Notes: generated from the letters alone by a model not told the origin. Counted from the first letter of the stretch, positions 20,951 to 58,256 are shown. The stretch: DNA of 64,000 nucleotides from Macrostomum hystrix (GCA_950097015.1 CATNEN010000025.1:2852001-2916000); one strand, 5' to 3'. Program-made: numbers and translations.

Positions 20951-21048
20951 TTGTAGCGTAAAAAAGGCTAAAAATACAGCTGCTAAAAAGTGTATACTGG
21001 ACGAATTAAAAATATTTCTGCTCCCCGAAGGGGGGCAAAACTTGCTAG

Positions 21049-21071
21049 TCTAATATACTAAAAATGAAAAT

Positions 21072-21104
<33 letters not shown>

Positions 21105-22142
21105 CTTCTATTATATCTTATATACTAAAAATGAAAATCTTGCTTGCTTGCTTGCTTGTTTGCAATCGACTAGCTCCCGAACGGCTCAACCGATTTTCGC
21201 AATTCCTTCGCTAAAAGATCACAATTGGTCCCGAATCGGTACACGTATTTTTATTAAGCTTAATTTCATTGCCAAGGGGATTAAATATTCGAAAAACAGT
21301 TTTAAATAGGCTTTTCTAATGCATTCTTGTTTTCAGCTTGTGCACAGTGAGGCTCCAGTGCCAATTTTAATGATTGCATCAGAGCCAGTTTTGATAACGA
21401 ACTGATAAGAACTCACAGGGAGGCTACCCAGAGGGTAGCGAAGGCAGCTAGTCTAATATACTAAAAATGAAAATCTTGCTTGCTTGTTTGCAATCGACTA
21501 GCTCCCGAACGGCTCAACCGATTTTCACAATTCCTTCACCAAAAGATCACAAATGGGCCGGAATCGGTACACGTATTTTTATTAAGCTTAATTCCATTGC
21601 CAAGGGGATTAAATATTCGAAAAACAGTTTTAAATAGGCTTTTCTAATGCATTCTTGTTTTCAGCTTGTGCACAGTGAGGCTCCAGTGCCAACTTTAATG
21701 ATTGCATCAGAGCCAGTTTTGATAACGAACTGATAAGAACTCCAGTGAGGCTACCCAGAGGGTAGCGAAGGCAGCTAGTCTAATATACTAAAAATGAAAA
21801 TCTTGCTTGTATGTTTGTTTGCAATCGACTAGCTCCCGAACGGCTCAACCGATTTTCAAAATTCCTTCGCCAAAAGATCACAAATGGGCCGGAATCGGTA
21901 CACGTAATTTTATTAAGCTTAATTCCATTGCCAAGGGGATTAAATATTCGAAAAACTGTTTTAAATAGGCTTTTCTAATGCATTCTTGTTTTCAGCTTGT
22001 GCACAGTGAGGCCTCCAGTGCCAATTTTAATGATTGCATCAGAGCCAGTTTTGATAACGCACGCGCGTACTGATAAGAACTCACAGGGAGGCTACCCAGA
22101 GGGTAGCGAAGGCAGCTAGTCTAATATACTAAAAATGAAAAT

Positions 22143-22175
<33 letters not shown>

Positions 22176-22885
22176 CTTCTATTATATCTATCTTCTTTTA
22201 ATATACTAAAAATGAAAATCTTGCTTGTTTGCAATCGACTAGCTCCCGAACGGCTCAACCGATTTTCGCAATTCCTTCGCCAAAAGATCACAATTGGTCC
22301 CGAATCGGTACACGTATTTTTATTAAGCTTAATTTCATTGCTAAGGGGATTAAATATTCGAAAAACTGTTTTAAATAGGCTTTTCTAATGCATTCTTGTT
22401 TTCAGCTTGTGCACAGTGAGGCCTCCAGTGCCAAATTTAATGATTGCATCAGAGCCAGTTTTGATAACGCACGCGCGTACTGATAAGAACTCACAGGGAG
22501 GCTACCCAGAGGGTAGCGAAGGCAGCTAGTCTTCTTATATACTAAAAATGAAAATCTTGCTTGCTTGCTTGCTTGCTTGTATGTTTGCAATCGACTAGCT
22601 CCCGAACGGCTCAACCGATTATCGCAATTCCTTCGCTAAAAGATCACAATTGGTCCCGAATCGGTACACGTATTTTTATTAAGCTTAATTCCATTGCCAA
22701 GGGGATTAAATATTCAAAAAACTGTTTTAAATAGGCTTTTCTAATGCATTCTTGTTTTCAGCTTGTGCACAGTGAGGCCTCCAGTGCCAAATTTAATGAT
22801 TGCATCAGAGCCAGTTTTGATAACGCACGCGCGTACTGATAAGAACTCACAGGGAGGCTACCCAGAGGGTAGCGAAGGCAGCTAG
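21049..22885 (+). mobile_element. Units 2-6: five tandem mini-Helitrons (327-410 bp; 5' type A, 3' type a)
   Basis: Each begins TC(TTC)T(A/T)ATATACTAAAAATGAAAATC, then (TGCT)n and CGGCTCAACCGATT, and ends GCTACCC-AGA-GGGTAGC-gaaggcag-CTAG. Confidence 0.92.
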
Positions 22886-23472
22886 TCTTCTAATATACTA
22901 AAAATGAAAATCTTGCTTGTATGTTTGCAATCGACTAGCTCCCGAACGGCTCAACCGATTTTCAAAATTCCTTCACTAAAAGATCGCAATTGGGCTGGAA
23001 TCGGTACACGTATTTTTATTAAGCTTAATTCCATTGCCAAGGGGATTAAATATTCGAAAAACAGTTTTAAATAGGCTTTTCTAATGCATTCTTGTTTTCA
23101 GCTTGTGCACAGTGAGGCTCCAGTGCCAATTTTAATGATTGCATCAGGGCCAGTTTTGTTAGGCGAGCGTACTGATAAGAAATTTCTCACCCAAATGTGC
23201 ATAGCTGTGTCAACCCCACTGGCAAGATAATTATGCCCAATGTGCACAGGCTGAGCTGGCTTCTGTTAACTGCTGGCAGTGTGATATTTTATTATTTTAT
23301 TTATTTATTTATTGAGTTTTTGCAATCAAATAGCATATTCACATCATACACCAAAAGGCTACAGCTGAGAACTGAATTGATCCAAGTGATCGGCCTTTTT
23401 CTAGCAGAGCGAAGCGAACCGAACCGAATCCCAGGCACAACAATGACACAGCCAAATAGCATAAATACAAAT

Positions 23473-24030
23473 CCAGGCTCAGAATCGATAGATATCTAGG
23501 CTGAGCATTGATAGATATCTAGGCTGAGCATTGATAGATATCTAGGCTGAGCATTGATAGATATCTAGGCTCAGCATTGATAGACATCTAGGCTCAACAT
23601 TTTTATAGATATCTAGGCTCAACATTTTATAGATATCTAGGCTCAGCATTGATAGTTATCTAGGCTCAGTATTGAAAGATATCTAGGCTCAACATTTTTT
23701 ATAGATATCTAGGCTCAACATTTTTATAGATATCTAGGCTCAGCATTGATAGTTATCGAGGCTCAGAATCGATAGAAATCTAGGCTTAGCATTGATAGTT
23801 ATCGAGGCTCAGAATCGATAGAAATCTAGGCTCAGAATCGATACATATCTAAGCTCAGAATCAATTGAAATCAAGGCTCAGAATACACGTATAGATGTCT
23901 AAGCTCAGAATTGAAAGATATCTAAGCCCAGAAGCGATTGAAATCTAGGCTGGGAATCGATGGGTATCTAGGCACAGAATCGATTGAAATCTAGGCTCAG
24001 AAATTAGAATTGATAGATACATAGGCTCCG
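23473..24030. repeat. About 23-bp satellite (CTAGGCTCAG(C/A)AT(T/C)GATAGATAT)
   Basis: About 22 degenerate copies; a decayed trace also occurs at 42630-42720. Confidence 0.9.
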
Positions 24031-24632
24031 AATTTGTAAATATACAATGATATTTATTTAAGACAATAATGACTGATTCGAAAGCACAGCACTGTCAGAT
24101 TTCAAGGCACAACAGTGACATACAAGTTTCATCAAGACTCAAGACTATCATCGTGTGGTAATCGGTCAGTGGACGCATTTTTTCACATCAATTTAGAGTT
24201 GAGAAGTTTATTAGAGACGTGAAAGGCCTTTGAGATAACTTAGACGCTATCATATTGAAATTTGGGCGCACTGGCCTACCCAAGCCAAGTCCTTACCGGC
24301 TATTCTAGGCTGGCGCAGGCAATGTACATTATTTCCCCTCTTGCCCCCAAATGTGCACGCACGGGCTGGAGAGCCCTCACCCCATTCCATCGGTTTTTAA
24401 GATTTCAAGCGGTCAGAGGTCCGTTTTATCGATTTTTACCCTAGGTCTTAAGATAATATCCGATTCAGCCCACTGTGATGATATATAGCTTGCAAATTAG
24501 TGTGGTTTATAAAGGCTCCTTATCTGATTCTTCAGACATCGAAATTCAAATCCAAATTCACAACCTATCTCTCTTTCAAGCCTTTCATTATCTCTCAACT
24601 TATCATTTCATTTCACTTTTCAGTTCTCAATC

Positions 24633-27600
24633 ATGGTTCGACGCGGCGCAAGCAGTTTGAAGAAAAGTCGCGATGCCAAGCGACGGCGACAAGCTGAATC
24701 CGAGGCCGATCGCGAGGTCCGTTTGGAAGAACGACGTCAGCGAATGGCTGAGAAGCGAGCCTCTCAAACTGAGGCAGAGCGAGCTGCCCGACTGGAGGAA
24801 CAGCGGCAGCGGATCGCTGAGCGCAGAGATGTCGAGACTGAGGCAGAGCGAGCTGCCCGACTGGAGGAACAGCGGCAGCGGGATGCTCAGCGCAGAGATG
24901 CTGAGACTGAGGCAGAGCGAGCTGCCCGACTGGAGGAACAGCGGCAGCGGGATGCTCAGCGCAGAGATGCTGAGACTGAGGCAGAGCGAGCTGCCCGACT
25001 GGAAGCCGAGCAGATTCGTCGCCGTGGAGCTTTGGTTTCCAAGTGAGTTTTATGAGGCTCTATAAAATAACGTTACATAACATAATTATGGTTTTATTTA
25101 GTTTTTTTCTAAATCGCCTCATAAGTGTTGATTTTTTTGCTGTAGATTTGAGTAACTTAACCTGCAGTCCAACAATTGGTTTAAAAATTCTGTAAATGCA
25201 GCTGTGCTTTATTTTCACTGCATTGCCAACTTAGGTCGGACACCCAGCAGCAAGGTATGGAAGCTATTGTACCATTTGAGCAGTTGCAGGTAATCCCTAT
25301 TATTGGTGATGGCAATTGCTTCTTTTATGCTGTGTGTGATCAGCTGCGTGGAACCCCGCTAGAAACTGACGCAGCCTCCTTGCGGCAGGATTTGTCTTGC
25401 CGTGTTGCAGAACTCATGCCACAGTTGGTTGCAGATGGCCTCATCGCACCTGAGAGTGCTGATGACATTGTGAGTTCCTCTTTTCAAACAGGCACTTATG
25501 TTTCAGACGAAGTTGCCTCTTTGTTGAGCCGCTGCTTTAATGTGGACCTGGTCATTTACCAGGCCAATGGTAATGTGATGCAGTATTTCAGGGCTAATCT
25601 CTATCCTCCTAATGCGATTGTGCGCGTGCTCTTGCGCCATGAGCATTACGAGTCACTGAGACTTCGAGAGCCTTTGCAAGCCCTTTCAGATGCAGAGTTT
25701 CCAAGCTTGGCAGCAAGCAAAACTCCTGCCAAGAGGGCCAAGAAAGCCAAGGGCCCGAGAGCGATGCCAGCTGACAGCCCCAGCTCATGTGCTGACACTG
25801 GAGCACAGGCTGAGCAGATGTGAGTAACTTGCTTTTGTTATTTTGCATTTATTCGTTTAAATCAGCTTAATCTGCTGACACAAATAAATCACTAGCATGG
25901 AAAGCAATGTCAATCAAATCAATGTACCCTCTTAATAAACTCGGCTCAACCCCTACTCAAACCCTGCTCACAGGCATGCCGAGCCGGTGATGCCAGAAGC
26001 CCCGGCTCACCAATGCGGCCCAATGAACCGCGCCTGCAATGACTGCGGCGCCCTGCTGTGGGCCAAGGAGACGAGCAATTTCTGCTGCGCCAAGGGCAAG
26101 GTGAAGCTGCCCACCCGTTCCATGCCGCAGGTCCTGGCAGATCTGTACACGGGGCAGCACCGCCTCAGTGCAGAGTTCCTGGCTAACATCAGGAGCTACA
26201 ACTCTGTGCTGCACCTGACATCTCTGGGTGCGAGGCTCAGACTGGTGCCTGGCTGGAGTCCCAGCTTCATCATCAGCGGCCAGCTGCATCACAACATGGG
26301 GCCGCTGCTTGCCGACACCTCAGCCGTGCCGCATGGCTGGCAGGTGTACTTCACGGACCGCGAGCTGGAGAGCCGCCTGAGCCTCAGCCAGAAGGTGAAG
26401 CCGGAGCTGCTGGAGCTGCTGCAAACTGTGCTGCACGAGTGCAACGGCTATGTGCAGAGCCTGCGAGCTGCTGCTCAGCGGATCAGTGGCGACCCTGAGC
26501 TGGGAGATGCGCGAATTGTGATTCACCCGGACCGACGACCAGCTGGGGAGCACATTCGGTGAGTGAGCTGTGTTATGGAGCTGCTGGTTGGGATCCTATT
26601 TCGCCTGCACTTATACTGTTCAGTCTGTGCAGTTGATTCTGTGAAGTACCTGCTGTACCAATTCCATTCCTGTTCATTCCCAGGCGTTACAATCTCCCTA
26701 CTGCCAATGAGGTTGGCATCCTGGTTGTCGGTGGTTCCGAGGACGCACCGACAAGCCGTGACGTTGTGATTCGACTGCGCGGAGGCGAAGTCCAGCGCAT
26801 ATCCGAGACCCACCGGTCCTACGACCCTCTGGAGTACGTGCTGCTGTTCCCGAATGGCGAGGACGGCTGGCACCCAGAGCTGCAGATGGCGAATGGGCGG
26901 AAGCTGACGCCCATGAAGTACTACGCCAGCGAAATCATGGTGCGAGCTGGCCAGTTCAACGTGCTGCACCACGGCAGGCGCCTCTTCCAGCAGTACCTGG
27001 TAGACATGGCTGCCAAGATCGAGTCCGAGAGGCTGCTGTACCTGCGCACTCATCAGAACGACCTGCGCAGCGAGACCTACAGCGGCCTGCGAGACGCTCT
27101 GTTCGCTGCTGATGGCAGGAGCACCGAGAGAGACCCCAATGAGATTGGTAAGCCTGCCCATGTGTACCTGTCTTCCAGCTTTGTAGGTGGACCCAGGTAC
27201 CTGATGGAGCGGCTGCAAGATGCAATGGCCTACGTGCACAAGTTCGGCAAGCCGGACCTGTTTGTCACAGCCACGTGCAACCCGAAGTGGCCGGAAATCA
27301 GCGTGCAGCTGCTGCCCGGTCAGCGGGCAGAGGACCGCCCGGACATTGTGACTCGAGTCTTTGAACTGAAGAAAAAGGCTCTGCTTGAAGTGCTCAGGAA
27401 GCGTTTTGGCAAGGAGGCTGCGCATGTGTGCTCCTTGGAGTACCAGAAGCGCGGTGAGTAAAATCAGATTTTCATGCAGACATTGGCAATATTAACAGCC
27501 TGGAATAACGAGTCCGCATGCTTTTATCAACTCGCCTCAGGCCTTCCCCATGTGCACTTCCTGCTCTGGCTGGCGAACGGGAGTCGAGTCACCCCGGATC

Positions 27601-30600
27601 GCTACGATGCCATCGTGTCTGCGGAGATCCCAGACCCACAGCGGCAGCCAGTGCTGCACGAGCTGGTCAAGACCCACATGATCCACGGGCCGTGTGGCGA
27701 GCTGAACCCGGCCTGCCCTTGCATGGAGAACGGCAAGTGCAGCAAGAGCTTCCCGAAGGACTTCCAGCCGGTGACGCTGACGAGCGACAGCGGCTATCCG
27801 TTCTACAGGAGGCGCTCCCCTGAGATGGGAGGCTTTACGGTGGACAAACTGTTCAAGGGTCGCAGCATCCAAATGGACAACAGGTGAGTCAGTAGCTGCG
27901 TGGCCATAGCATTTCTGTGCTCTGCAAGCCGCTGCTTCCCTCCAATCACCAGGTGGGTGGTGCCATACAACCCTGACCTGCTGCTACAGTTCGCGTGCCA
28001 TTTGAACGTAGAGGTTTGTGCCACTGTCAAGTCTGTCAAGTACGTGATCAAGTACTTGATGAAGAATGGCGACATGGCGGTTTTCAAAGTCGCCGCCGCC
28101 GCAGGAGCTGCTGAAGCTCAGCCGAGTGCTCAATCTGAGCAGCCGGAGAAGCCCCGTGATGAAATCTCCGAGTACCTGTCTGCACGCTACATTGGTCCGA
28201 TGGAAGCTGTTAACACCATCTTGGCCTTTGAGGTAATTGCTCTGCTCTGCTTTCATTGCCTGTGCTTTTAGTACTGCATTACGTTTTTTTCAGCAGCTCT
28301 GATGCTCAAAAAATATCCTCACCTTTGCCCAGGTGCACAACAGGTTCCCAGCGGTCATCCGACTCTGTGTGCACAAGTCGGAAGAGCAGCTCGTGTACTT
28401 CAACGAGCAGACCGCGGGCGCCAGAGCAAAGGCGCCACGAGACTCGACACTGACGGCCTTCTTCAAGCTGTGCCGCACTGACGAGTTCGCCCGCCTGCTA
28501 CTCTACACAGAGGTGCCCACCTTCTTCGTGTGGCACCCGAGTGCGAGAGAGTGGCGTCGAGCCAAGCAGGGCGTCGATGTCGAAGGACATCCCGGCGTGA
28601 AGCGCAACACCAACATTGCGCGGATGTACACGGTCAGTCCTAGAGCTGGTGACCTGTTCTACCTGCGGCTGTTGCTGCTGCACGTGCGAGGACCGACCAG
28701 CTTCGAGTCGCTGCAGACCGTGGCCGGCGTGCATTGTGCCAGCGCCAAGGCCGCCTGCATGGCTCTCGGCCTGCTGCAGCGTGATGATCACTGGCATCGC
28801 TGCATGACTGAGGCTGTCCAGAGCCGAATGCCGCGAGCTCTGAGGCACCTGCTGGCTGTCGTTCTCATCTGGGGCGAGCCAGACGACGGCGCTGATCTGT
28901 GGAGCAGGTTTGCAGAGGATCTCTGCGAAGACCTGCGCTTCCACCAACCGGACTTAAGCGCCGAGGAAGTCAGCGACCTGGCTCTGCGGGAGCTGCAGAG
29001 CATGCTGACGTCAATGGGCGGCCGCAGTCTGCAAGAGTACGGACTGCCTGCTGCCTCTGCAATGCCGCAAGTCGGGCCGCTGCAGTTTGACACGGTCGAA
29101 CAGGCGGAGATCACCGAGATGCGGCTGCCAATGCTCACGGCCGAGCAGATGGCCATCTACGAGGCTGTGACTGTGGATCTTGTCGCTGGCTCGGGCGGCC
29201 TGCATTTCATTGACGCTCCGGCAGGCACTGGCAAGACCTTCCTGCTGGAGGTTTTGCTGGCGTTTGTGCGGAGTCGAGGGGAAGTCGCCCTGGCTGTTGC
29301 GTCGTCGGGAATCGCAGCCACCCTGCTGCCAGGCGGGCAGACGGCGCATTCAACGTGCGTTTTTTAATGGAAATCAAATTCACACTTAATGTTCTCCTGC
29401 TCATTCAGTCTCAATCTACATTTTTCGCCAGATTCAAGATCCCAGTGCGGCTGGTTCGCTCTGACAAGGACGTGTGTTCTGTCCGAGCGCAGTCTAAGCT
29501 GGCCGCAGTCTTTCGCACTGTACGGCTGATCGTCTGGGACGAGATCTCCATGACAAACCGGAAGGACCTGGAGGCTGTCGACCGCAGTCTGCGAGACCTG
29601 CGGAAGCAGGACTGCCCGTTCGGCGGAATCGTCGTGGTCTGCGCTGGAGACTTTCGCCAGCTGCTGCCGGTGGTGAAAAATGGCACGCGCGCTAACAACA
29701 TCCTGGCGTGTGTTAGCAAGTCCCCGCTGTGGTCTTTGTTCCGGAGGCACCGCCTATCCAAGAACATCCGGCTGCAGAGCTGTGCTGATGCTGAGCTGTA
29801 CCATCGCTATATGCAGCTGCTCATGCAGGTAAGCTTTGTTCTTGCTGTTTTTAGATAACCTCACAGGCTGCAGTTCTCGTGCATTTACCTGCCAACCCCA
29901 CACAGATCGGCTCTGGGGTAGCCGATCAGTCAGACGACACGGTCTGCCTTCCTGCCAAGATCATCATTCCGACGGAGGCACCGCTGTCCGAGCTGATCCA
30001 GTTCGTGTACCCTTCGTTCGAGGCGTCAGCGGAGCGCGACGGCTACTTTGCCAGCCGAGCCATTCTGGCGCCCTACAACGATGCGGTTGACGCGATCAAC
30101 AACGAGTGCCTGGCCATGTTCCCAGGCCAACTGCGCGAGTATCGCTCAGTGGACAGCGTGGCTGACGAGGAAGCGGCCACGCACTTTCCTCCGGAGCTGC
30201 TGAATCAGCTGGATGCTCCGAACTTCCCTGCTCACCTGCTGAAGCTCAAGGTGGGCATGCCGCTGGTTCTGCTGCGGAATCTGAATCCGCCACGGCTGTG
30301 CAACGGCACCCGGCTGATCATCCTGGAGCTGGGCGAGAATGTGCTGCGCTGCAAAGTCGCTGCCGGCCAGTTCACTGGAGATGAGATCCTGCTGCCGCGG
30401 ATTCCACTGGAGCCCAACAATGCTGACCTGCCAGTCTGCTTCAAGCGGCTGCAGTTCCCAGTCAAGCCGAGCTTCTGCCTGACGATCCACAAGTCGCAGG
30501 GCCAGTCGCTCGACACCGTGGGCATCGACCTAGCTGTCGGCTGCTTCGCCCACGGCCAGCTGTACACGGCGCTGTCCCGGGCCAAGAATGTCGACAGCGT

Positions 30601-30664
30601 GCGCGTCCGGATCTCCGGTGAGCGGACGAGAAATGTCGTGTACCCTGAGGTGCTGAGTGACTGA
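24633..30664 (+). CDS. Helitron Rep/helicase 1: STPR-like repeats, OTU domain, HUH Rep and PIF1 helicase; 9 exons, 1716 aa, apparently intact
   Basis: Exons 24633-25042, 25235-25819, 25974-26558, 26684-27453, 27541-27883, 27953-28232, 28333-29354, 29432-29828 and 29906-30664, all GT-AG and phase-consistent (5151 nt). Motifs: GDGNCFF...HEHY (OTU), FVTATCNPKW, GLPHVHFLLW (HUH), KYVIKYLMK (Y2), DAPAGTGKT, IVWDEISM, GDFRQLLPV, TIHKSQGQS, HGQLYTALSR. Confidence 0.93.
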
Positions 30665-30908
30665 ACCTCGGTATCACAAGTTGAGCCACCTGATATGTAA
30701 ATGGTGTTTAACACCATGGGCCCATGGAAGGCATATCAGTTCAAATCCTGTTACAGTGGCACTAAAAACCTTAAAAACAAGTGCACCACCATAGTTAAAG
30801 CCATTTAGTCAGATTATTACCAGCCAAAATCTGAAGCATATAAAAACTAGCACCTAAAATATAACAATTTTCGTTAAAGACAATTCAGTGCAGATATATT
30901 ATGGCTAA

Positions 30909-31208
30909 AAATAATTGAGCGTTTTATGTGCGAAAATTGCAAGCAAAAGCTTGAAAAAAATTAGACAAATATAGATTAGCTAGAAATAATTGAGCACTTC
31001 ATGTGCGAAAATTGCAAGCAAAAGCTTGAAAAAAATTAGACAAATATAGATTAGCTAGAAATAATTGAGCACTTCATGTGCGAAAATTGCAAGCAAAAGC
31101 TTGAAAAAAATTAGACAAATATAGATTAGCTAGAAATAATTGAGCACTTCATGTGCGAAAATTGCAAGCAAAAGCTTGAAAATAAAATGTAGACAAATAT
31201 AGATTAGC
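30909..31208. repeat. 75-bp tandem repeat, 4 copies
   Basis: ttagacaaat recurs at 30961, 31036 and 31111. Confidence 0.9.
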
Positions 31209-31469
31209 ATTGTAAGGTTTCGTGCCACTGTAGTGAGAGCAGGTTGGCTGCATAGTGTGGGCCCTGAGAAGCAGTTGAAAAGTACATGTTCGCTACTTTC
31301 ATGATCCATACTTTCTTCTGCTTAAACTGGAGAGACTATGCAGCCATGGTCTGAAGTAGCCTTAGCAGACCTGTAGGCTCCTTGTGATGCTTAATTCGAG
31401 AGTAAACAGCTGTTCCCAGCTGCTGAGTGTGCTGAGTGCATTGCTTAGCCCCCATGCATGTCTCCCACG

Positions 31470-32580
31470 ATGCGGAGTTGAAGCCAGCAAGCAGAAAGAC
31501 TGACACCTGAGAATAGATCCATTTGATCAAACTGTGCAGGGTTTCTGGTCTTGCTGGTGGCAAACTCTGCAGAAGCATCTGCCCAACCCCCCACCTCACT
31601 ACTGATTTGAATGTCACTGAAATATGAGAATGAGTTTGCTGTTATTAACTGGCATAAAGTGGATTGATTGCTACATTTCTTATTTTACTATTATTGACCT
31701 CTCAAATTCAATCTTCCATGCGGAGTTGAAGCCAGCAAGCAGAAAGACTGACACCTGAGAATAGATCCATTTGATCAAACTGTGCAGGGTTTCTGGTCTT
31801 GCTGGTGTCAAACTCTGCAGAAGCATCTGCCCAACCCCCCACCTCACTACTGATTTGAATGTCACTGAAATATGAGAATGAGTTTGCTGTTATTAACTGG
31901 CATAAAGTGGATTGATTGCTACATTTCTTATTTTATTATTATTGACTTCTCAAATTCAATCTTCCATGCGGAGTTGAAGCCAGCAAGCAGAAAGACTGAC
32001 ACCTGAGAATAGATCCATTTGATCAAACTGTGCAGGGTTTCTGGTCTTGCTGGTGGCAAACTCTGCAGAAACATCTGCCCAACCCCCCACCTCACTACTG
32101 ATTTGAATGTCACTGAAATATGAGAATGAGTTTGCTGTTATTAACTGGCATAAAGTGGATTGATTGCTACATTTCTTATATTTTACTATTATTGACTTCT
32201 CAAATTCAATCTTCCATGCGGAGTTGAAGCCAGCAAGCAGAAAGACTGACACCTGAGAATAGATCCATTTGATCAAACTGTGCAGGGTTTCTGGTCTTGC
32301 TGGTGTCAAACTCTGCAGAAGCATCTGCCCAACCCCCCACCTCACTACTGATTTGAATGTCACTGAAATATGAGAATGAGTTTGCTGTTATTAACTGGCA
32401 TAAAGTGGATTGATTGCTACATTTCTTATATTTTACTATTATTGACTTCTCAAATTCAATCTTCCATGCGGAGTTGAAGCCAGCAAGCAGAAAGACTGAC
32501 ACCTGAGAATAGATCCATTTGATCAAACTGTGCAGGGTTTCTGGTCTTGCTGGTGTCAAACTCTGCAGAAGCATCTGAAT
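31470..32580. repeat. About 248-bp tandem repeat, 4 full copies plus a partial
   Basis: gcggagttgaagcc recurs about every 248-250 bp. Confidence 0.95.
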
Positions 32581-32717
32581 CAGCACCAAATAAGTCTTTA
32601 TTTGGACAATGAACTCTCTAGCTTTGTATCTCAAATGACAAAAGAGAATAAATTAAAATATTGTCGCAAGCTAATAAATAATATTAATATATTATTATTG
32701 ATCGTTTATTATTAATA

Positions 32718-32915
32718 CTAGACCCGCAGCCAGCGAGGAGGCAATTCTGTCCATTTCGTTGACTCCTGAGCACACGCCCACACCAGGTGTGTACATCTGT
32801 CATGACTTTCTCGTCGACCTTCGGGGCTCCGCCCCAAATAAATGTAGCCTTAGTCGCGGAATCGAGCTCAGGACCTTGATGCTAGAGGCAAATGCATTCA
32901 GCCACTCACCAAACC
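32718..32915 (-). mobile_element. tRNA-derived head plus CTAG-terminated tail, nested in Helitron 1 in opposite orientation
   Basis: Minus strand reads gagtggctgaatgc...gagctcgattccgcg...tttggggcggagcc...gtgctcaggagtca...gcctcctcgctggctgcgggtCTAG|T. Confidence 0.6.
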
Positions 32916-33449
32916 GTTTTTTTCACATCGCAATAGCAGCATATCTTATTACCTATATAGCATATTGCACCTGCTAAATTGCATATTTACAGTTTAGTTT
33001 TTCTGTATTCGCCACTCATCCCATCCGATAAATTGTTCAACAATTGGCGCATCCGAATTGCTGCTTCTCATCGTTCCCATTCTCATTACCTCGCCTGTCA
33101 GTCAACTGAAATGATCAAGTGGGGATAGAATGAGAGTCTTGTAAGGCCTAGCAATTAACAGAATATACACTCTGGTGTTGAAAGTCAAGTGTTTGATGGA
33201 CGTTTAACATGAGCATTTGATAATATTGCTTGCTAGACTCGTATTAGCATTTTTAATTGGCGTTCTACCTGTCTGAGTAGAAATATGCCACTGCTGAAAT
33301 TAACTGCCTCAGTGCAGTACAAAAGTACTTTCTAGGAACTGCATTAGCTCCAGCGATAAACCCGAATTAATAAGTTTTAGCCAAACCAGAGAGAAGAGAG
33401 AAGCTGGCACAGAAAATACAAAAAATGCAAAAACGGACTTTAGGAAAGC

Positions 33450-34310
33450 ACTTTTCGAAATCTTATCTCCATAGAATGGCTGTTTCAAAAGTCTCATCCC
33501 TAGAATAACCGTTTCAAAAATCTTACCAACGAATAGAATGACCATTTAAAAAGTCTCAACCAAACAATGGCTGTTTCAAAATCTCACCCCTAAAGCCGCT
33601 GTCTCAAAATCTCACCCCTATAGCCGCTGTCTCAAAATCTCACCCCTAAAGCCGCTGTCTCAAAATCTCACCCCTAAAGCCGCTGTCTCAAAATCTCACC
33701 CCTAAAGCCGCTGTCTCAAAATCTCACCCCTAAAGCCGCTGTTTCAAAATCTCACCCCTAAAGCCGCTGTCTCAAAATCTCACCCCTATAGCCGCTGTCT
33801 CAAAATCTCACCCCTAAAGCCGCTGTCTCAAAATCTCACCCCTAAAGCCGCTGTCTCAAAATCTCACCCCTAAAGCCGCTGTCTCAAAATCTCACCCCTA
33901 AAGCCGCTGTCTCAAAATCTCACCCCTAAAGCCGCTGTCTCAAAATCTCACCCCTAAAGCCGCTGTCTCAAAATCTCACCCCTATAGCCGCTGTCTCAAA
34001 ATCTCACCCCTAAAGCCGCTGTCTCAAAATCTCACCCCTAAAGCCACTGTCTCGAAATCTCACCCCTAAAGCCGCTGTCTCAAAATCTCACCCCTAAAGA
34101 ATGGCTGCCTCAAAATCTCACCCCTAAAGAATGGCTGCCTCAAAATCTCACCCCTAAAGAATGACTGTCTCAAAATCTATCCCTGTAGAATGGCAGTTTC
34201 AAAATCTCATCAATGTAGAATGGCAGTTTCAAAATCTCATCCCTGTAGAATGGCAGTTTCAAAATCTCATCCCTGTAGAATGGCAGTTTCAAAATCTCAC
34301 CCTGAAAACG
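33450..34310. repeat. 28-bp satellite (CTCAAAATCTCACCCCTAAAGCCGCTGT) with degenerate 30-bp units at the edges
   Basis: Period 28 (33603, 33631, 33659...); about 20 homogeneous copies. Confidence 0.95.
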
Positions 34311-34835
34311 ACCTTACGAAGGAGAATAAAAAGACAACAAAAAAGACAATTACCCAAGAGAGTTCATTAGTTATTTTTCAAGAACAATTGTGAGCTCGGC
34401 ACCACTTAGCTAAAAGCGTTTTTTATTTCAGCACACTCAAAATGACAGGCATAGCGAAGGCGATAAAGTTTTTGTTGCTACATGCATTTTTAAGGGGAGG
34501 AAAGTAAAAAAAAAACATTTTTTCAAGCTAGGTAGGTATTTTCTTAGAAACTTAAGAAAAACACGCGTAGATTTATTAGAAAGGTTTTGCATTAATGCTT
34601 ATTATGATATAAATCCAATTATATTGACGATCAAAAAATTTAATCCTTACAAAGAAATTTCAAATGAATTACTAAGCAAAGCTGATACAGATTTGTTTTA
34701 TATATAAAGATATTTATTATTTTAAAACTTTTGTTTATTAATATTAAAATATTATTAAAATATTAATATTATGAATAAAGTTAGTAAATGGCAGTTTACT
34801 AGGTACTGCTGAACTAGGTACAAATGAAAAAATAG

Positions 34836-34866
34836 GTACTGCTGCTCCTGCTGCTGCTACTGCCGT

Positions 34867-34931
<65 letters not shown>

Positions 34932-34996
34932 CTGCCGCTGCTCAGCCAGCTCCGGGCAACGGCGGACCGGATGCGGCCCGGCACAAAGGTAGCAGG
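34836..34996 (+). repeat. (GCT)n trinucleotide tract, possibly within a poly-Ala exon
   Basis: About 20 uninterrupted GCT units. It is flanked by ag| and |gtaact and reads TAAPAAATAVLAAAA...ASAAAQPAPGNGGPDAARHKGS. Confidence 0.5.
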
Positions 34997-37481: not shown

Positions 37482-37543
37482 GGAGCACATTTAGCGGTAT
37501 GAATTCTTTTTGCATACTTCTGAGGTGCCTGAAGTGAAGCCAG

Positions 37544-41040: not shown

Positions 41041-41349
41041 AAGATAAAAAAGATTAAACGCAGGATTCATTCTATATTTTCCTAAAGTTTTGTAGAAGCA
41101 ATTCAAACAAGATAAACTTTTTTGAGTTGATCAGGTGTATTTATTTACTATTTGTTTAAAGTAAATAATTTAACACAAAATTTCTTGAATTGAAGAATGA
41201 AAATGGGAGGCTATTGCCATTTAAAAGTGAAATTTAATAAATGACAGTGCTTTTTGGGTGCTTGGAAAGATTTAGGTACTGAATACTGGCTGAGATGAAG
41301 AAGAGTAACCAGTTTTAGTATGTTATATAATATTATATGATTTGATATA

Positions 41350-47686: not shown

Positions 47687-48894
47687 TAAATATACTAAAA
47701 TTCACGTGTTGTTTGTCCGTCTGTCTGTCTGTTGGTTATCTCCTCCTAGAATACTGACAAGTCAACTTTGAAACTTATATGGGAAAATTGGAAATTTTCC
47801 TGGTCAGGCTATAGGCTATTTTAATTCTGAAATTTCAAATTCTAAGATCCTCAAAAAAGCAGAAAAATGATTTCGTAACCTTCTCTGGACACTTTTTTCT
47901 TTTGAGCTGAGAAAACTGGAGTCGGTAAAAGTGGTTGCGCTATCATTTCGGCCTATCTGTTCAGTGTATTTTCTCTCCAGTGGAGGGTTGGCAATCGGTT
48001 TGAAAACGTGGCGGAGAGGAGGCCGTGCTCACATTCTAACTGCCTCTGTGTATTGGCGGAGTCAGCTGCTATTGAGGGTCTGATTTGTTCAATAAGCAAC
48101 TGCGTACATTTCGCTGAGTTTGGGCAGGCTGGGTTATAAATTTCAATTGAAAAATTGGCGGGCCTCTCAGTGTAGGCGGAGAAGAATGTACTCACTGAGA
48201 TGGCTGATTTTTTCGGACAGGAAAGCATTAAAATTTCAATTGTGAACTGTGCTTTTGTTTTGCAAGATTGGTGGTTGAAACTTATATTGCTGGAAAGAGC
48301 TTGAAACACTGATTTCAGGGATGTGATTTTCTTTTCGAAATTCGAGAAACTGTGAATGCTGCAGGCGGAAAATTTTTTGCCTTTTTAACTGTTTTTAAGC
48401 GAACGTACAGTGTCGCCTAGACTGCAAAGGAGAGAGAGGGCCGCCAATCAGTTTATCGCACATTCTGATTGGCGTAGTGCATTGGGCGGAGGAGGTGGGC
48501 TGGCGGTCGACTGAGATGGGGTCTGATTTATTTAATAAAAATGGGCGCACACTGACTGGGGCAGTAAGGAGGCGGGCTGCTCAATCCTTTTAGAATTTTT
48601 AATTATCGAAAATCGCACCTCTGCCTTGGTGGAGAGAGGAATGTGCTTACAAATAGAGCTGGCCTGGGGCTGCCTCACTGTACTTAAATGGACTATATTC
48701 AATTTAACTGATTCAAAGTTTGCAGAGTTCGCATGCATGTACATTGAGCTGCACTGCAAGCAAGCCCACTACTAAATACATGAGTTTATCTGTTTAGTGG
48801 CTTTTGCATCTCTCGATTTATTTCTTAGCATCGCTCTGTGATTTGTGTGTTTTCTTATTTGCATTCCTTACTTTGCACTGTTATTATCATCTAA

Positions 48895-51800
48895 ATGCCG
48901 AAACGTGGTCGCAGCAATCTTTCACGCTCCACACGCGCTGCATCGGATGCCAAGAGGCGTAGGACATCCGAGACTCACGATGAGCGTGCAAGGCGCCTCC
49001 AGCAAGACCGGCTGCGCACTGCTGAAAGCCGGGAGGCTGAAAGTGGAGCCGATCGTCAGCATCGCCTCCAGCAAGACCGGCTGCGTACTGCTGAAAGCCG
49101 GGAGGCTGAAAGTGGAGCCGATCGTCAGCATCGCCTCCAGCAAGACCGGCTGCGTACTGCTGAAAGCCGGGAGGCTGAAAGTGGAGCCGATCGTCAGCAT
49201 CGCCTCCAGCAAGACCGGCTGCGTACTGCAGAAAGCCGGGAGGCTGAAGGCGTAGGCGAGCGTCAACATCGCCTCGAGCTGGACAGGCTGCGCATTGCCG
49301 AAGCCCGGGAAACTGAATCCGACGCAGCCCGTTTGCATCGCCTGGAGGTGCAGCGGCAGCGGCAGAGTCAGCATCGCGATGACGAGCCAGCTGATGAACG
49401 CGACCGCCGTTTGCATGCTCAGGCAGGGCGGCGCAGAGATAGGTGGGTGTTTTTCGATATTATTTTTTTATCCACTTAACCTATGTGCTTTCGCTTTCAA
49501 AGTGTCAGATTCTGTATGTAGACTTGGACTTGGTGTTGTTGAATGGAACTATTTATTATTTGTTGAGATACTAAGATGTCTTTTAACTTTATTTCCTTGC
49601 CACAGACTGCTGGCGTTAGCACACCAGCCACATTTACTCGGTCGGATGGACATTATTTGTCCTCACTGCAGCGCGCTTCGTTGGAAGGACGAACTAGCTA
49701 GCATTTGCTGCCATTCCGGAAAGGTAGATATTTCTTACTTTAATTTCGTCCTTAATCATTCTTTAAGTATTTTACCTATTTTTTCCAGACGAAATGTGTT
49801 ATGATTGATAATTGTGAACATTGTGCAAGCTGTTTGTTGTTAAGCTACATTTTTTCATAATCAAATTCACAGACCCTTCTGGAGCCGCGCCGCGATCCGC
49901 CCGATGTTCTGAAGCGGCTGCTTACTGGCGAGCATCCGCTCAGCGCACATTTCCTGAAGGATATTAGGAGGTACAACGGCGCGCTCCACATGACGTCGCT
50001 TGGTGCCACGCAGCGTGAGCAGCCCGGCTGGAACCCCAGCTTCATCCTCCATGGTCAGATGCACCATAGGATCGGCAGCCTGTTGCCGAACCCGGGGGAT
50101 GTGGCCAGGTTCTGCCAGGTGTTCTTCGTCGACCAAGAGCTGCAGACGGGACTGCAATTGGCGACCGGCCTGAACGGCAATTTGCTACAGGAGCTGCAAG
50201 CTATTCTGTTTGAATGTAACAGTTACGTTCGTAGCCTAAAGTCGGCAGTGGACTTGCTGCGCAGTGATCCGCAGCTGCAGAGTGCCAAGGTAGTGATAAA
50301 CCCCAGTGCCCGTCCATCTGGGGAGCATGTCCGACGGTTCAACCTGCCTGAGTGCAGTGAGGTCGGCATCCTGACGGACCTAGGCTGAAGCTGATGGCGT
50401 AGTTCAGGCGCAACGGCGGGACGTGATATTGCGTTTGAGAGGTGGTGGTAAGTTTACTATTACTAAAACAGCGCAGTTTCAATTCTAAGTATCCCTTTTT
50501 ATTTTATAACATTCTTGCTAATATTTCCACAAAAGTATGCTGTGAAAATAATATTATTTTTATACCTTTTCCTAAAACAAACAAAGCTGTCATTCCTGAT
50601 TCATCAACCTCAGGCCTCCAAGACATCTTCGAGACCCACCGCTCCTATGATCCGTTGGAGTATGTGCTGCTATTCCCCTTCGGTGAGGACGGTTGGCATA
50701 TTGGACTCAAGGAGGATCGCGGCATCACCACGATGAAGTACTACGCCTTCATAATTCAGGTGCGGCCAGGCCAGTTTAACAGCCTGCTGTACGGTCGCCG
50801 GCTCTTCCAGCAGTACCTGGTGGACCAGGCTGCCAAGATCGAGTCCGAGCGGCTCATGTACATCCGGCTCCACCAGAAGGATCTGCAGTCCGAAAGCCTG
50901 CGGGGTCTGCGAGACGCGCTGCACGAGGACGACGGCAACCCAGAGGAAGTCGGGAAGCATGTCATTCTAACTTCCAGCTACGTGGGAGGTCCCCGATACC
51001 GCCTGGAACGTCAACAGGATGCCATGGCATACGTCCATGCCTTTGGCCGCCCAGACCTGTTTCTGACAATGACTTGCAACCCGAAGTGGCCAGAGATTCT
51101 GGCTGAGCTGCTTCCGGGACAGACTGCCGTCGATCGGCCGGACATCACCGCCCGGGTGTTCGAGCTGAAGAAGAAGGCCTTCCTCAACAGACTGAAGAGT
51201 CTCTTTGGGGACACCCTAGCTCGGGTCTGTTCGCTCGAGTACCAGAAGCGAGGCAAGTGTTTTTTATTAATACTAACGTACATAACAATTGCATTCACCA
51301 TTGCCTACTTAAAGGGGGGTATAATAAGTTGAGATAAGGCCAACGCTTTCCTCATTCACCTGCATCAGGTCTTCCCCATGTGCACGCGCTACTTTGGCTG
51401 ACGATCAAGCTGAAGCCGGACCAGTATGACGCCATTATCAGTGCGGAGATCCCAGACCCTGACGCCGACGCCGACCTGCATCAGCTGGTCGCGGAGAACA
51501 TGCTGCACGGTCCCTGTGGGCAGCAGCTCAACTCCGCCGCATCTTGCATGGAGAACGGCAGGTGCAGCAAGCGCTACCCGAGGGAGTTCCTCGCTGCCAC
51601 TAAGGTGGAGGAAGATGGCTACCCGCGTTACTGTCGCAGATCCGTCGAAATGGGCGGCTTCACGGTGATAAAGCTCGCAAAGCTTCGTGGCGGTCAGAAG
51701 GTGAACTTCACTTTCGACAACCGCTGGGTCGTACCGTTCTGCCCAGCACTGCTGCGCGAGTTCCGTTGTCACCTTAACGTCGAGATCTGCGCAACAGTTC

Positions 51801-54776
51801 GCGCCATCAAGTACGTGGTGAAGTACATCACCAAGGGTAGCGATGTGGCAGCATACCAGATCCGACAAGAGACGGCTGCTGCGAATGCCAGCGCAGATTC
51901 GGCCACTGAAAGACCACCGGCTGCTCCGCAGGCGAGTCGAGACGCCGCCAGTCCGTCCACGCAGGCCGAAATGTCGGCTGGGACTGCTGCAAAGCCTGCA
52001 GCTTCGCGCAAGATGATCGACGAGATCAAGGACTACCTTCTGGGCAGGTACATCGGTCCAATGGAGGCAGTCAATACCATCTTGGGCTTCGAAGTGCACA
52101 GCCGATACCCGCCTGTGATCAGACTCGCCGTCCATCTTAAGGACGAACAGCGGGTCTTTTTCACCAGTGAGACGATTCAAGCTGTTGCTGCTCGGCCCAA
52201 GGCGACGACTCTGACCGCCTTTTTTGATGTAAGTTTGCAAAAATTGTATTTGCTAATAATACGTCTAATTTTGCAAATTAACGCTAGAATGCTCCTGTTT
52301 TTACTCTCCCAGCTCTGTCGACAAGACGAAGTCGCCCGTGGCCTGCTGTACCAGGAGGTGCCCCGGCACTTCACCTGGGACCACAGCGCGCGCCAGTGGC
52401 ATCGCGCAGGTCGCGGCCGAGTTACTGTTGATCAGCCAGCTGGTGTTCTAACGACCGGCAACATTGGCCGCATCTACACGGTGAGCCCTCGGATGGGCGA
52501 CTGCTTCTACTTGCGCCTGCTGCTGGTGAACGTGCGCGGCCCGACGTCGTTCGAGGCGCTGCGCACTGTGGACGGCGTTCTGCTGCCGACCTTCAAGGCC
52601 GCTTGCCAGGCTCGCGGGCTGCTGGAAGACGACAGGCACTGGCAGCTGTGCATGCGCGAAGCTGCGGAGACGCGGTTGCCAGCGGCTCTACGTCGCCTTT
52701 TTGCCGCTATTCTCACCCACGGTGACCCCAGTGACCCGGCAAAGCTGTGGCAGGAATTCTCCAGCGAGATGTCTGGCGATCTGCTGCACCAGGGCTACAG
52801 CCCTGAGGATGCCGAGGCCAATGTACTGCGGGAGCTACAGCACGGGCTGGAGTCCATGGGAGGATCTGAGCTGTCTGTCTACGGCCTCCCTGCACCACAG
52901 GCGCAGCCGGATCAAGTAAGTAAATAGATTACCATAGACAATTTATAGACAGACTGCCAAAGTAGTTTTGTCTGCAAGTTTCAAAAGCTTCCTTTAATTT
53001 GCAGGGTCGACTTCCCTCTGACTGCCTACCGACGCCGCAAGAAGCCGCTGAGCTCCAGTCTGAAGTGGAGGCACTGAGCACATCATTGACTGATGAGCAG
53101 CGATCTGTTTTCGAGGCCGTGCAGTCTAATCTGGCAGCTGGCGGCGGCGGCTTGCACTTTGTGGACGCTCCTGGCGGTACTGGCAAGACGTTTTTGCTCA
53201 CGCTTCTGCTGAAGTCTGTTCGAGCGAGGCGTCAGATCGCTATTGCAGTAGCTTCATCGGGCATCGCGGCCACCATACTTCCTGGGGGACGGACCGCCCA
53301 CTCCATGTGAGTGCTGCTTCTGTTTTAAATATTTATTCTGCGCATACATGTTACGTCCGCAGACTATACCGTCAAGACACGGAAAAAATAAAATAGTTCC
53401 TTTTTAAACCATTCTTTTGTGAAACATTACGTGCGAAATCTTTCTTTCTATGCATTGATCAATCGTTCCGCTACACCCAACCCATGATCTCATCTCAGGT
53501 TCAAGATCCCTGTCTGCGCAGTACGGCAGGACAACGCCTTCTGTTCTATTGGCAAGCGGAGTAAGCTGGCGGAGCTGCTGCGGAATGCGCGGCTGATCGT
53601 TTGGGACGAGGCGCCGATGACGCACCGCAAAGACCTCGAGATCGTCGAGAGGACTCTGCGGGATCTCTTGCACGTCGAGCAGCCTTTCGGAGGGGCGCTG
53701 TTGGTGCTGGCTGGCGACTTTCGCCAGCTGCTGGCTGTTGTGCCCGGAGGGACGCAGGCCAATACGATCGAGGCCTGTTTGAACCGGTCGGTTTTGTGGC
53801 CGCACTTCCGTCAGCACCAGCTAACAAGAAACCTGCGGCTCGAGGGTGGCTCAGCTGCCCAGGGTTACGCAGATTTCCTTATGCAGGTCAGAAATTTTAC
53901 TTTCATGTTCCTTGATTAATGAAAAGAGAATCGTACCTTTTTTTGCAAAAAATTGTACTTTATTACTTGCTTTTTGTCTCATGAATTACTACATTTTGCC
54001 CTCAGGTTGGCAACGGAGAGCTGCTAGAGGACGAAGAGGGCATGGTGTCCTTGCCTAGCGAGATCATCCTGCCCGATGACACAACCACTGAGCAGCTCAT
54101 CCAGCACGTCTACCCGTCCTTTGAGCCGAACGTCGAACGTGATTTGATGTTCGCGGAGCGGAGCATCCTAGCGCCACTCAACAGGACCGTGGACGAGGTC
54201 AACGCCGCCTGCTTGGCGCTCTTCCCCGGTGCGAGTCGGGTCTACCTGTCTGTCGACTCGATTCCGCATGATGATACGGCAGCGACCAACTTTCCACCGG
54301 AGCTGCTAAACCGGCTGGATCCCAATGGCCTGCCATTGCACCGGCTGGAGCTCAAGGTCGGCATGCCGGTGATGATGATGCGCAATCTGGACCCGCCGCT
54401 GCTGTGCAATGGGACCCGGCTGCTGCTGCGCGAACTGCATGACAATGTCCTGCTGGCGGAGGTTGCCACCGGTGTCTACCGCACCCGGCAGGTATTCATC
54501 CCGCGGATCCCACAGGAGCCGAGTCCGAGCGAGCTGCCCTTCACCTTCCGCCGCCTGCAGTTCCCGATCCGGCCGTGCTTCGCCATGACCATCCACAAGA
54601 GCCAGGGCCAGTCGCTGGGCACATACGCTGTCGACCTGACGACAGCTTGCTTTCAGCACGGCCAGCTTTACGTGGCTCTGAGTCGTGCGCGGAGTGCCGA
54701 TGGCGTGAAAGTTCGAGCTCCAGGCGGACGGACGCAGAATATTGTGCTGCGGCAGCTTATCGGCAAGCATAACTGA
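48895..54776 (+). CDS. Helitron Rep/helicase 2 (STPR-like repeats, Rep, PIF1; no OTU); 9 exons, about 1600 aa, one frameshift near 50384
   Basis: Exons 48895-49442, 49606-49723, 49873-50447, 50614-51252 (GC donor), 51369-52228, 52313-52915, 53005-53306, 53499-53886 and 54006-54776. Phases are consistent if 1 bp is removed from exon 3. Motifs: FLTMTCNPKW, GLPHVHALLW, KYVVKYITK, DAPGGTGKT, IVWDEAPM, TIHKSQGQS, HGQLYVALSR. Confidence 0.9.
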
Positions 54777-55269
54777 TTAACTCTATGTTTTGCATGTTCG
54801 ATGTATGCATGGTTAGCTGAAAAAATACTGAACTATTCAGAGCGAATATCTGTGAAAAAACTGCTAAGTGTGCTAGAATTCAATGTGGACCCTCTACTGC
54901 AATTGGCTGCAATTAGCCGTCAATGTAAATCCGATGTAATCCGAGAACCGAAAACTAAAGAGGAGAGAGACAGGCCTCTTTCCTTATTAGAGAAAGTAAA
55001 AGATAATTTTTTGACAACTGAATAAACTGTTAGGGTTGGTGACATAAATTATGAGTGAGGGAAATGACACGGTAAAAATTATAATTAAGGCGTTGACAAG
55101 AATACTAACGACTGAATAAAATACTATATCAATTCTTTGTAAAATCTATGTACAGCTCTCCGCCTGAATTTCTTAGATATATTGAATTATGCCGCTTTAT
55201 ATGACTCACTGTTCTTCACATGTCTGCTGAATTTAGAGCTAAAAATAAATATACCCCATAGTGTACTCA

Positions 55270-55431
55270 GGGTGCGCAGAATACAGAAAAAAGACGCGAT
55301 TCGATAGGAACAAACAGACAAAAATACAAGGACAAAACAGTATATCGAATTTAAAAATTTTTAATAAACTCTTAATTCCCGAATGATTTGCTTAAATCCC
55401 GAATTTGTTTGACTTCGTATTCTGCGCACCC
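55270..55431. repeat. 162-bp segment with perfect 15-bp inverted ends (possible MITE)
   Basis: GGGTGCGCAGAATAC ... GTATTCTGCGCACCC; no clear TSD. Confidence 0.5.
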
Positions 55432-55763
55432 GCAAATGATGTCTTCGATTTCGTTATTTCAATTCAACAGCGGCTAAGGACTCCAACTGCCAGTTCTGTG
55501 TCTGGAATAAACAATATTAAAGGTCGCAGAATTCCACAAGCATTTTTGAGTTTAACGGTATAGTTCAAAAGTGCTAGGAGTTTGATCCCCTCAACTTCAT
55601 CCACTGAGAAGGAATGGAAGGAAAGTGTGAAATTCTGAGGGATTACACAAGTCGAGGGCTCTAAGGGGAAATGTGAAATTCGCATTGTTAGAGTTTGGCA
55701 GATGGAATTCACGCGCAAGGACTTTGATCCCCTCAACCTCCTCCGGAGGAGGAGTTTAGCTCG

Positions 55764-55786
55764 TAAATATACTAAAATTCACGTGT

Positions 55787-55821
<35 letters not shown>

Positions 55822-57662
55822 TGGTTATCTCCTCCTAGAATACTGACAAGTCAACTTTGAAACTTATATGGGAAAATGGGAAATTTTCCTGGTCAGGCTA
55901 TAGGCTATTTTAATTCTGAAATTTCAAATTCTATGATCCTCAAAAAAGCAGAAAGGCTATTAAGTAGTATATAGTAGGCAAATGTCCTTCCCGCTGTGAT
56001 GAAATTGGCCTCGGTTAAATGAGTTGCGTCAACACATTGTGCCTATCTGTTTAGTGTATTTTCTCTCCAGTGGAGGGTTAGCAGTCGGTTTGAAAAAAAA
56101 TGGGGCGGAGAGGTGGCCGTACGCACATTCTAACTGTCCCTGTGTATTGGCAGATAGAGGGTGCCGCGAGTTATTTCTATTGAGGGGTCTGATTTGTTCA
56201 AAATTGAAGTGCGTACAATGGGCAGGGCAGAGTTGGCTGAGTTAAAATTCAATTTATAAAATTTGCGGGCCTCTCAGTGTAGGCGGAGAAGAATGTGCTT
56301 ACTAAACTGGCTGCCCTTTGCAGAAATTTCAACTGAGAATTATTATTTTGCTTTTTTAAGATTTGTGGATAAAATTTGTACTGCTGGAGAGAACTTGAAG
56401 TTCTAAATCCAGAGATATAAATTTCATTGCTGAATTCCGAAAATTGGGGATGCCAAGGGCAAATAAAGTTTTTATACTTTTGCAATGCTTTCAGCTGAGT
56501 GTACAGTGTCTCGGCGAGATTGCTAAGGAGAGAGAATTCGCCACAATACAGTTTCACACATTCCTATTCTCGAAGGCGGGCTGTTGAATTTTATTTATTG
56601 AAATTCGCACCTCTGACTGAGCGGGGCCCGGAGAACTGGCTGTCGTCAATATTAATGGCTCGGACTTCACCTGTTTTAACGGGTGGGGTTTAATTTAAAG
56701 TTGATGGAGTTCGCGCGATATGATTTCTAGCCCCTCAATCTTATCCGAAAGTTGTCGTCTATTTTAATTCTGAAGATTCTGGGCATGGTAGCTAAAGAAA
56801 AATTGGTCAATTTTGAATTGTTTTCAACAGTTTAGTCGGACAAAAGGCGGTTAACGCACATTGCTACTTTCAGACATCATTGGGTGAGGAGTTTTTGGTT
56901 AGATGAGGCGATGGGAGATGTGGCGACGGGAGATAAGGCAATGGGAGTTTAGGCGATGAGAGATGAGGCGATGGGAGATGAGGGGATGGGAGATCAGGCG
57001 ATGGGAGATGTGGCGACGGGAGATGAGGTGATGGGTGATCAGGTGAAGGGAGATGAGGCGATGGGAGATGAGGCGATGGGAGATGAGGCGATGGGAGATC
57101 AGGCGATGGGAGATGAGGCGATGGGAGATGAGGCGATGGGAGATTAGGCGATGGGAGATCAGGCGATAGGAGATGAGGCGATGGGAGATGAGACGATGGG
57201 AGATGATGCGATGAGAGATTAGGCGATGGGAGATGAGGTGATGGGTGATCAGGTGATGGAAGATGAGGCGATGGGAGATGAGGCGATGGGAGATGAAGCG
57301 ATGGGAGATGAGGCGATGGGAGATGAGGCGATGGGAGATCAGGCGATGGGAGATCAGGCGATGGGAGATCAGGCGATGGGAGATGAGGCGATGGGAGATG
57401 AGGCGATGGGAGATTAGGCGATGGGAGATCAGGCGACGGGAGATGAGGCGATGGGAGATCAGGCGATGGGAGATCAGGCGATGGGAGATGAGGCGATGGG
57501 AGATGAGGCAATGAGAGATGAGGCGATGGGAGATGAGGCGATGGGAGATGAGGCGACGGGAGATGAGGCGATGGGAGATCAGGCGATGCGAGATTTGGCG
57601 ACGGGAGATGAGGCAATGGGAGTTCTCTCCCCTAACTTCCTCCGGAGGAGGAATTCCGCTCG
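55764..57662 (+). mobile_element. Unit 14: non-autonomous Helitron, type C
   Basis: Near-copy of unit 12; the 3' end is slightly diverged (cttcctccggaggaggaattccgCTCG). Confidence 0.85.
56901..57621. repeat. 15-bp satellite, about 48 copies
   Basis: Tandem repeat. Confidence 0.95.
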
Positions 57663-58256
57663 TACTATACTAAAAATGAAATGCTTGCTTGGTTGGTTGT
57701 AATTGATTTTCTCCCGAACGGCTCAACCGATTTTCACCATTTCTTCACCAAAAGATGCCAAATATGGGGACAATTATACACGTATTTTTATTAAGCTTAA
57801 CTTTATTGCTAAAGGGATTAAATATTCGAAAAACATGATTTTTCAAAGGTCAAACATCTTGGCCTATTGAGAATTTTACTCACTGCCACTGAATTGAAAT
57901 TGCATCGTCAAATTGCGCAACAACCCCTAGCTGATTGAATTTAAAGCCTGCACTCTGGAGACAAATTGGAAATAAATGTACACAACCAACCGCGACACAA
58001 AGTGTACTCTATTTTCTTACTTCATTGTACAAAGCCAGAACTTTAAGAATTCATTTTATAAGGCTGATTTTTGCACCCACTAACCAACAGTCGGAATAGC
58101 CGATGTGTAGGCACTAGGAATAGGTTAGGCTAGGCTAGGGTTCGATTCTGCACTGCGTCAAATCATTTAGACTAATTTTCAGCCAGTAGTGTTTGAAGAC
58201 TATTTTAATTTATTTTTTTCATTTCGTAAATAAAATATCATAAATCATAGCACACC

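Follow-up and report, generated by a model that had tools for sequence, protein, structure and literature searches.

How do Helitrons of different families come to lie tail to head, joined precisely to the base, in one place in a genome? The question is raised by a 64-kb window of Macrostomum hystrix DNA (by the window we mean the whole stretch that was analysed), where 17 Helitron units, every one of them on the plus strand, are chained from 19166 to 63230 over about 44 kb, with 16 joints that follow one another along the chain and a single insertion site. Helitron target choice, end swapping and sequence capture are still poorly understood. If resident ends serve as acceptors, then Helitron-derived satellites, autonomous elements hidden in derivative arrays and modular head/tail shuffling would all follow from one enzymatic property; should end targeting prove wrong, the locus would simply be a big instance of Helitron arrangements, tandem and abutting, that are already known. 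Our main reading, to which we give a probability of about one half from the sequence, is that the train was built stepwise by RepHel transposases joining incoming DNA to resident ends.

Anatomy of the Helitron chain

The chain fills one A|T site within a 20-bp minisatellite, which is found on both sides of it with its phase kept to within 1 nt. The left host flank (18551-19165) contains about 30 copies, identified with TRF, and has the target A as its last base, and the right host flank (63231-63320) begins with T and continues with about four degenerate copies. The outer left boundary therefore reads A19165|TC and the outer right boundary, where the last unit stops, CTAG63230|T63231. Host A|T insertion without target-site duplication is seen at these outer ends only, and the internal joints are all G|T; none of the 17 units sits at an A|T site inside the chain.

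Within the chain, each unit begins with a T immediately 3' of CTAG, CTCG or a CTTG pseudo-end. The start of a unit consists of a short T-rich leader followed by the motif TATACTAA, which occurs 17 times on the plus strand and 0 times on the minus strand, against a chance expectation of 0.82; none of 100 shuffles reached 17. The minus strand carries neither a tail nor a head. The 3' end of each complete unit is a hairpin and then CTAG or CTCG. The initial annotation had described each next unit as starting with T straight after CTAG or CTCG in constant orientation, and this is borne out by the 17/17 plus-strand units, the CTTG pseudo-ends being additional.

All the units named here are on the plus strand. 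The chain opens with B1 (19166-21048), a non-autonomous Helitron with a divergent head (TCCAAC followed by TATACTAA), minisatellites of 23 bp and 18 bp, and a b tail made of a hairpin and CTAG. It is followed by a first truncated A head of 67 bp (21049-21115), which ends in a (CTTG)7 pseudo-tail with a new head directly after it, and by A1-A3 (21116-22119), three mini-Helitrons of 327-341 bp with an A head, an a tail and joints of the form CTAG|TCTAA. A second truncated A head of 74 bp (22120-22193), also ending in (CTTG)n, lies within a 1.07-kb higher-order duplicate that matches 21044-22079 at 91%. The mini-Helitrons A4-A5 (22194-22885) precede the autonomous Helitron H1 (22886-42811), and three more mini-Helitrons, A7-A9 (42812-43829), follow it with the leaders TCTTCTAA, TCTAA and TA. 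Next are C1 and C2 (43830-47686), non-autonomous partners of H2 with a C head, a 15-bp minisatellite and the c tail CTCG, then H2 itself (47687-55763), the second autonomous Helitron, and C3 (55764-57662), which ends in a variant c' tail. The chain closes with B2 (57663-63230), which has an A-like head, a 23-bp minisatellite in 194 copies, an 18-bp one in 21 copies, and a b tail.

There are thus about four types of head (A, A-like, B1 and C) and five types of tail for two transposase families. The TATACTAA core is common to all heads, and the tails vary in hairpin and terminus. Head starts are TC in 12/17 units and T only (TA or TT) in the other 5/17, and over 175 bp the A-like head of B2 is about 82% identical to A. 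The terminus is CTAG in tails a, b and b' and CTCG in tails c and c', and CTCG differs from the canonical CTRR; in the 6/6 tails folded, the subterminal hairpin has a stem of 4-8 bp and ends 9-12 nt before the terminus. No terminal inverted repeats were seen at the unit ends.

Two autonomous elements and their partners

As expected of canonical Helitrons (HLE1), H1 and H2 both encode HUH Rep and PIF1 helicase domains, distributed over several exons with small introns. The two RepHel proteins match Helitron_like_N with E values of 3.5e-47 and 5.9e-52, both elements have PIF1, Pif1_2B and UvrD_C domains, and all blocks were found in order by tblastn. The proteins of H1 and H2 share about 52% amino acid identity with each other, and their nearest relatives are from Macrostomum lignano (65-84% identity). 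There is no record of the ORFs in the window as called genes. Both transposase genes are apparently intact, and having the two of them in one window would help to make a practical test system.

H1 begins with an A-type head (22886-23181), of which about 296 bp are common with the A units, followed by a 23-bp minisatellite and the RepHel exons at about 24.6-30.7 kb. Downstream of these lie an internal duplicate of 1.9 kb (30675-32577 equals 37544-39442 at 99%), RPA-like OB-fold ORFs (36027-37107), a 250-bp satellite, a MITE (41349-41735) and the b' tail at 42811, the first proper one to follow. A CTCG at 32813 was considered as a tail and discarded: the RPA-like ORFs are 56-59% identical to ORFs directly after the helicase in an 88-93% identical H1-like relative, which is known from Logan contigs spanning coding parts only, and because these homologues lie further downstream, H1 extends past 32813. 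An H1-like element of M. lignano terminates in the same b'-type hairpin and CTAG, and a run contig links the b' region to a 23-bp satellite resembling that of the 5' part of H1.

H2, whose RepHel exons lie at about 48.9-54.8 kb, has a C-type head and the c tail CTCG, and C1-C3 are thus its non-autonomous partners. From these ends, RepHel1 belongs with heads A and A-like, more distantly with B1, and with tails a, b and b', and RepHel2 with head C and tail c.

Joints within and between families

The initial annotation had reported four joints between different families, and on reading the sequence all four were found at their bases: b|A (CTAG21048|T, then an A head), b'|A (CTAG42811|T, then an A head), a|C (CTAG43829|T, then a C head led by (TC)6) and c'|A-like (CTCG57662|T, then the A-like head of B2). 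Two further joints, at 21115/6 and 22193/4, each follow one of the truncated heads (67 and 74 bp) ending in (CTTG)n, and CTTG-3' has been described as an alternative 3' end for Helitrons (PMC4778049).

The joints had been taken to stitch unrelated families together, and this stands for two of them. Since H1 combines an A head with a b' tail, and the b'-type tail is conserved in the H1-like element of M. lignano, the partners at b|A and at b'|A are different elements of one and the same transposase family; only a|C and c'|A-like cross transposase families. If the C run entered an a|B2 joint once, both of these are accounted for. All family-2 units of the 17-unit chain stand together in one block, an outcome of 14/2380 orderings (p about 0.006), and the chain is therefore not a freely mixed cassette array. 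Cross-family joining is rare at this chain, and mixing is rarer than random. The likening of the chain to an array of integron cassettes is not supported: the order is clustered rather than arbitrary and no entry site is identifiable.

Neighbouring units are not sisters

The anatomy of the chain, the family assignments and the heterogeneity of neighbours are shown here, and the last of these bears on whether a single circle was simply copied over and over. In an identity matrix the A units are 94-99% alike, their nearest relatives are non-adjacent and their shared variants are distributed as a mosaic. Same-family neighbours differ by 2-10% plus indels; C1, C2 and C3 are 90-95% alike with indels, and after roughly the first 190 nt the H2 head is only about 80% like the C heads. 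A two-headed A unit is present twice, at 91-93% identity. Comparison of the A units found no in-register higher-order repeat between the three A blocks. H1 and H2 are each embedded in register among diverged mini-derivatives, and the M. lignano locus L001 has the same in-register arrangement, with c|C three times and then c|RepHel.

Neighbours are thus not closest relatives, as they should be in a simple rolling-circle concatemer. With neighbours non-sister and autonomous elements in register, over-replication of one circle alone fails, as the initial annotation had argued, and some end-directed joining is needed. Local duplication acted too, as indicated by the 1.07-kb repeat (91%) and the 1.9-kb repeat (99%).

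Proposed joining to resident ends and its alternatives

If the chain was built in this way, incoming Helitron DNA would have arrived as single units or short multimers, with tail|head circles as their probable source, and the RepHel transposases would have attached it, strand-specifically and base-precisely, to the ends of copies already in place. The cleavage and strand-transfer chemistry would be that of normal integration, except that a resident boundary (N|T-head) would be cut in place of an ordinary A|T. The majority of the joints connect units of a single transposase family; the C run would have entered a family-1 joint once, and the chain would later have been reshaped by local duplication, premature CTTG ends and recombination. 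Related activities have been described: the Helraiser transposase precisely cleaves plus-strand tail|head junctions (PMC5876387), and abutting Helitron insertions have been seen in bats (PMC4778049). Support for end joining comes from the co-orientation of 17/17 units, the exact tail|T joints and the absence of units at internal A|T sites. The non-sister neighbours, the in-register position of H1 and H2, with the like arrangement at M. lignano L001, the combination of a common TATACTAA head core with divergent tails, and the additional multi-headed variants found in run contigs at about single-copy depth also speak for it.

That the transposase selects the resident end is what we infer from these features, and we lean to the start of the head as the side recognised. 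The initial annotation had proposed a resident CT(A/C)G|T end as the acceptor. Precise joining to resident ends is indeed needed, but the resident head is indicated at least as strongly, by the leader lengths, the (TC)6, the multi-headed units and the motif common to all heads, and its start, rather than a tail, may be what serves as acceptor. The leaders in 42812-43829 measure 8+5+2 nt, the sum of three canonical 5-nt leaders; two units would seem to have gone in behind the TCT of a resident, a weak hint from a single case. The leader of C1 is T(TC)6, C2 starts with TAAA, and the next three C-type joints are without TC; the pile-up ahead of three TC-less joints hints weakly at entry at the start of a resident head, and it could instead be microsatellite growth.

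Homology could in principle do much of this without transposase targeting. In a Campbell-type scheme, double-stranded Helitron circles would integrate by homologous recombination into related residents, unequal crossing-over would add to the array, and heterologous joints would be rare accidents. Such integration yields in-register tandem units with exact circle junctions, and double-stranded circles whose tail|head joint is exact do occur as intermediates (PMC5876387). Heads are common to A, H1 and B2, and both heads and tails to C and H2; the A units are mosaics of shared variants, and the higher-order and 99% duplications reveal local recombination at the chain. The joints themselves speak against this scheme, which we regard as improbable. 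After the b tail of B1 the head is A-type from its first base, a joint (b|A) that homologous exchange cannot produce; nor can it yield a|C and c'|B2, with only about 14 nt in common, and the leader at c'|B2 is not C-type, contrary to a crossover in the shared motif. The shifted TCT and the TC pile-up are also left unexplained. Somewhat less probable again is an origin elsewhere for the chain, or for much of it, which would have reached this site as a copied composite with its joints inherited, either through end bypass, in which an outer head is read through as far as a distal tail, or through segmental duplication. Read-through has been documented, as have chimeric or multi-termini Helitrons (PMC4778049, PMC5148889), the outer B-type head and b tail would delimit one giant element in one A|T site, and the two-headed A unit does occur twice. 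This would relocate the origin of the mixed joints without explaining them, the A units of the three blocks are not in-register copies of one another, and the 3' interior of H1, at roughly 2-5 haploid equivalents in run contigs by a rough estimate, gives no sign of many copies of that part of the chain. An assembly artefact, in which repeats were wrongly chained, would suit a region as repetitive as this one, where no listed contig bridges b'|A. We consider it very unlikely indeed, as the units differ at many positions, the joint leaders are distinct, an independent M. lignano assembly has the same architecture and the flanking satellite keeps its phase from one side of the chain to the other.

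Joining to resident ends is not obligatory, because solo A|T insertions of A exist. These were found in the Logan contigs of sequencing runs, short contigs that provided copy-number estimates (roughly 10^3 copies of A), a few solo flanks and the multi-headed variants; an exact-pattern scan of metagenome contigs gave no match to the A head. Counting against our main reading are that it concerns one locus at which just one cross-family event is required, and that the mosaic variants among A units would be compatible with recombination. End-directed joining is a reasonable idea, still unproven. More tentatively, and at somewhat less than even odds, RepHel in this lineage may prefer a resident Helitron boundary as acceptor across families, most likely the TATACTAA head start; Helitrons would then self-assemble into polarised multi-family trains and breed new head/tail chimeras.

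Comparison with known systems

Tandem Helitron arrays in bats, plants and Drosophila have been ascribed to rolling-circle concatemers (PMC5876387, PMC5148889, PMC11934779). They share with this chain a single orientation and an exact tail|head joint equal to the circle junction, but here the units are heterogeneous and non-sister, two transposase families are involved and autonomous elements are embedded in register. In Myotis, abutting insertions and de novo 3' ends have been described (Grabundzija 2016, PMC4778049), and their alternative CTTG-3' end resembles that of the two truncated heads; those cases are scattered, single and invoked for new 3' ends, whereas here 16 consecutive joints extend over 44 kb at one site. 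The multi-termini and composite FoHeli Helitrons (PMC5148889) have duplicated short 5' termini of 31-85 bp, comparable to the 67-74 bp here, insertions at or beside the 5' end of another element, and chimeras formed via read-through. These fungal elements are non-canonical, and long multi-family trains are not reported among them.

Integron cassette arrays are alike by analogy only, being ordered, in one orientation and growing at defined recombination sites; the chain is without a dedicated attI, integrase or promoter logic, gives no sign of a single entry point, and has its families clustered. In IS91/ISCR one-ended transposition, and with HUH Rep proteins generally, a 3'-OH at one cognate site is joined to a 5'-phosphotyrosine at another, and tandem multimers arise. 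Those systems are bacterial or viral. IS91 is cited in the Myotis study (PMC4778049). Tandem arrays and tail|head cleavage (PMC5876387), abutting Helitrons and CTTG ends (PMC4778049) and multi-termini composites (PMC5148889) are already known. The published tandem and abutting Helitrons weaken the case for novelty that the initial annotation had thought worth testing, for an ordered multi-family chain with two coding members and their dependants.

Helitron relatives in other loci and nested repeats

The autonomous Helitron H1 (22886-42811, forward strand) has relatives outside the window. Five runs belonging to a single series yielded Logan contigs (L003-L007) with an H1-like element that shares 88-93% DNA identity with it, and the ORFs of this element follow the same order as in H1, namely Rep, helicase and two OB-fold ORFs. 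This shared order implies that RepHel and RPA-like genes are conserved as a pair. A further H1-like element, from Macrostomum lignano (L008), ends in a b'-type tail, whose CTAG (13212/13213) is followed by TCTAGATAAC, which may be either another Helitron head or host flank.

The mini-Helitron A units and the C units, non-autonomous partners of the second autonomous Helitron H2, were matched by contigs of organism B from the same study (runs X4 versus X1; entry at 42812-43829), 156 of them at 99% identity or more. Such matches might stem from activity shared very recently, from horizontal transfer or from cross-contamination between samples.

Both RepHel genes contain 69-bp in-frame tandem repeats in the 5' part of the coding sequence, with 3.5 copies in H1 (24763-25003) and 4.7 in H2 (48994-49317). 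The 3' part of H1 also houses a MITE-like element (41349-41735) with internal palindromes and terminal inverted repeats of 25 nt that are 96% complementary. Elsewhere in the window, a Gypsy-type LTR retrotransposon (2954-7481) is bounded by LTRs of 218 bp with 99.5% identity to each other, and its single ORF, of 1085 aa, contains protease, RT, RNase H and integrase zinc-binding domains.

In H1 the helicase is separated from the RPA-like OB-fold ORFs (36027-37107) by 5.3 kb (within 30675-37543), whereas this spacing is about 390 bp in a relative; among the added DNA are a 99% duplicate of H1's own 3' satellite region, 28-bp repeats and CTG repeats.
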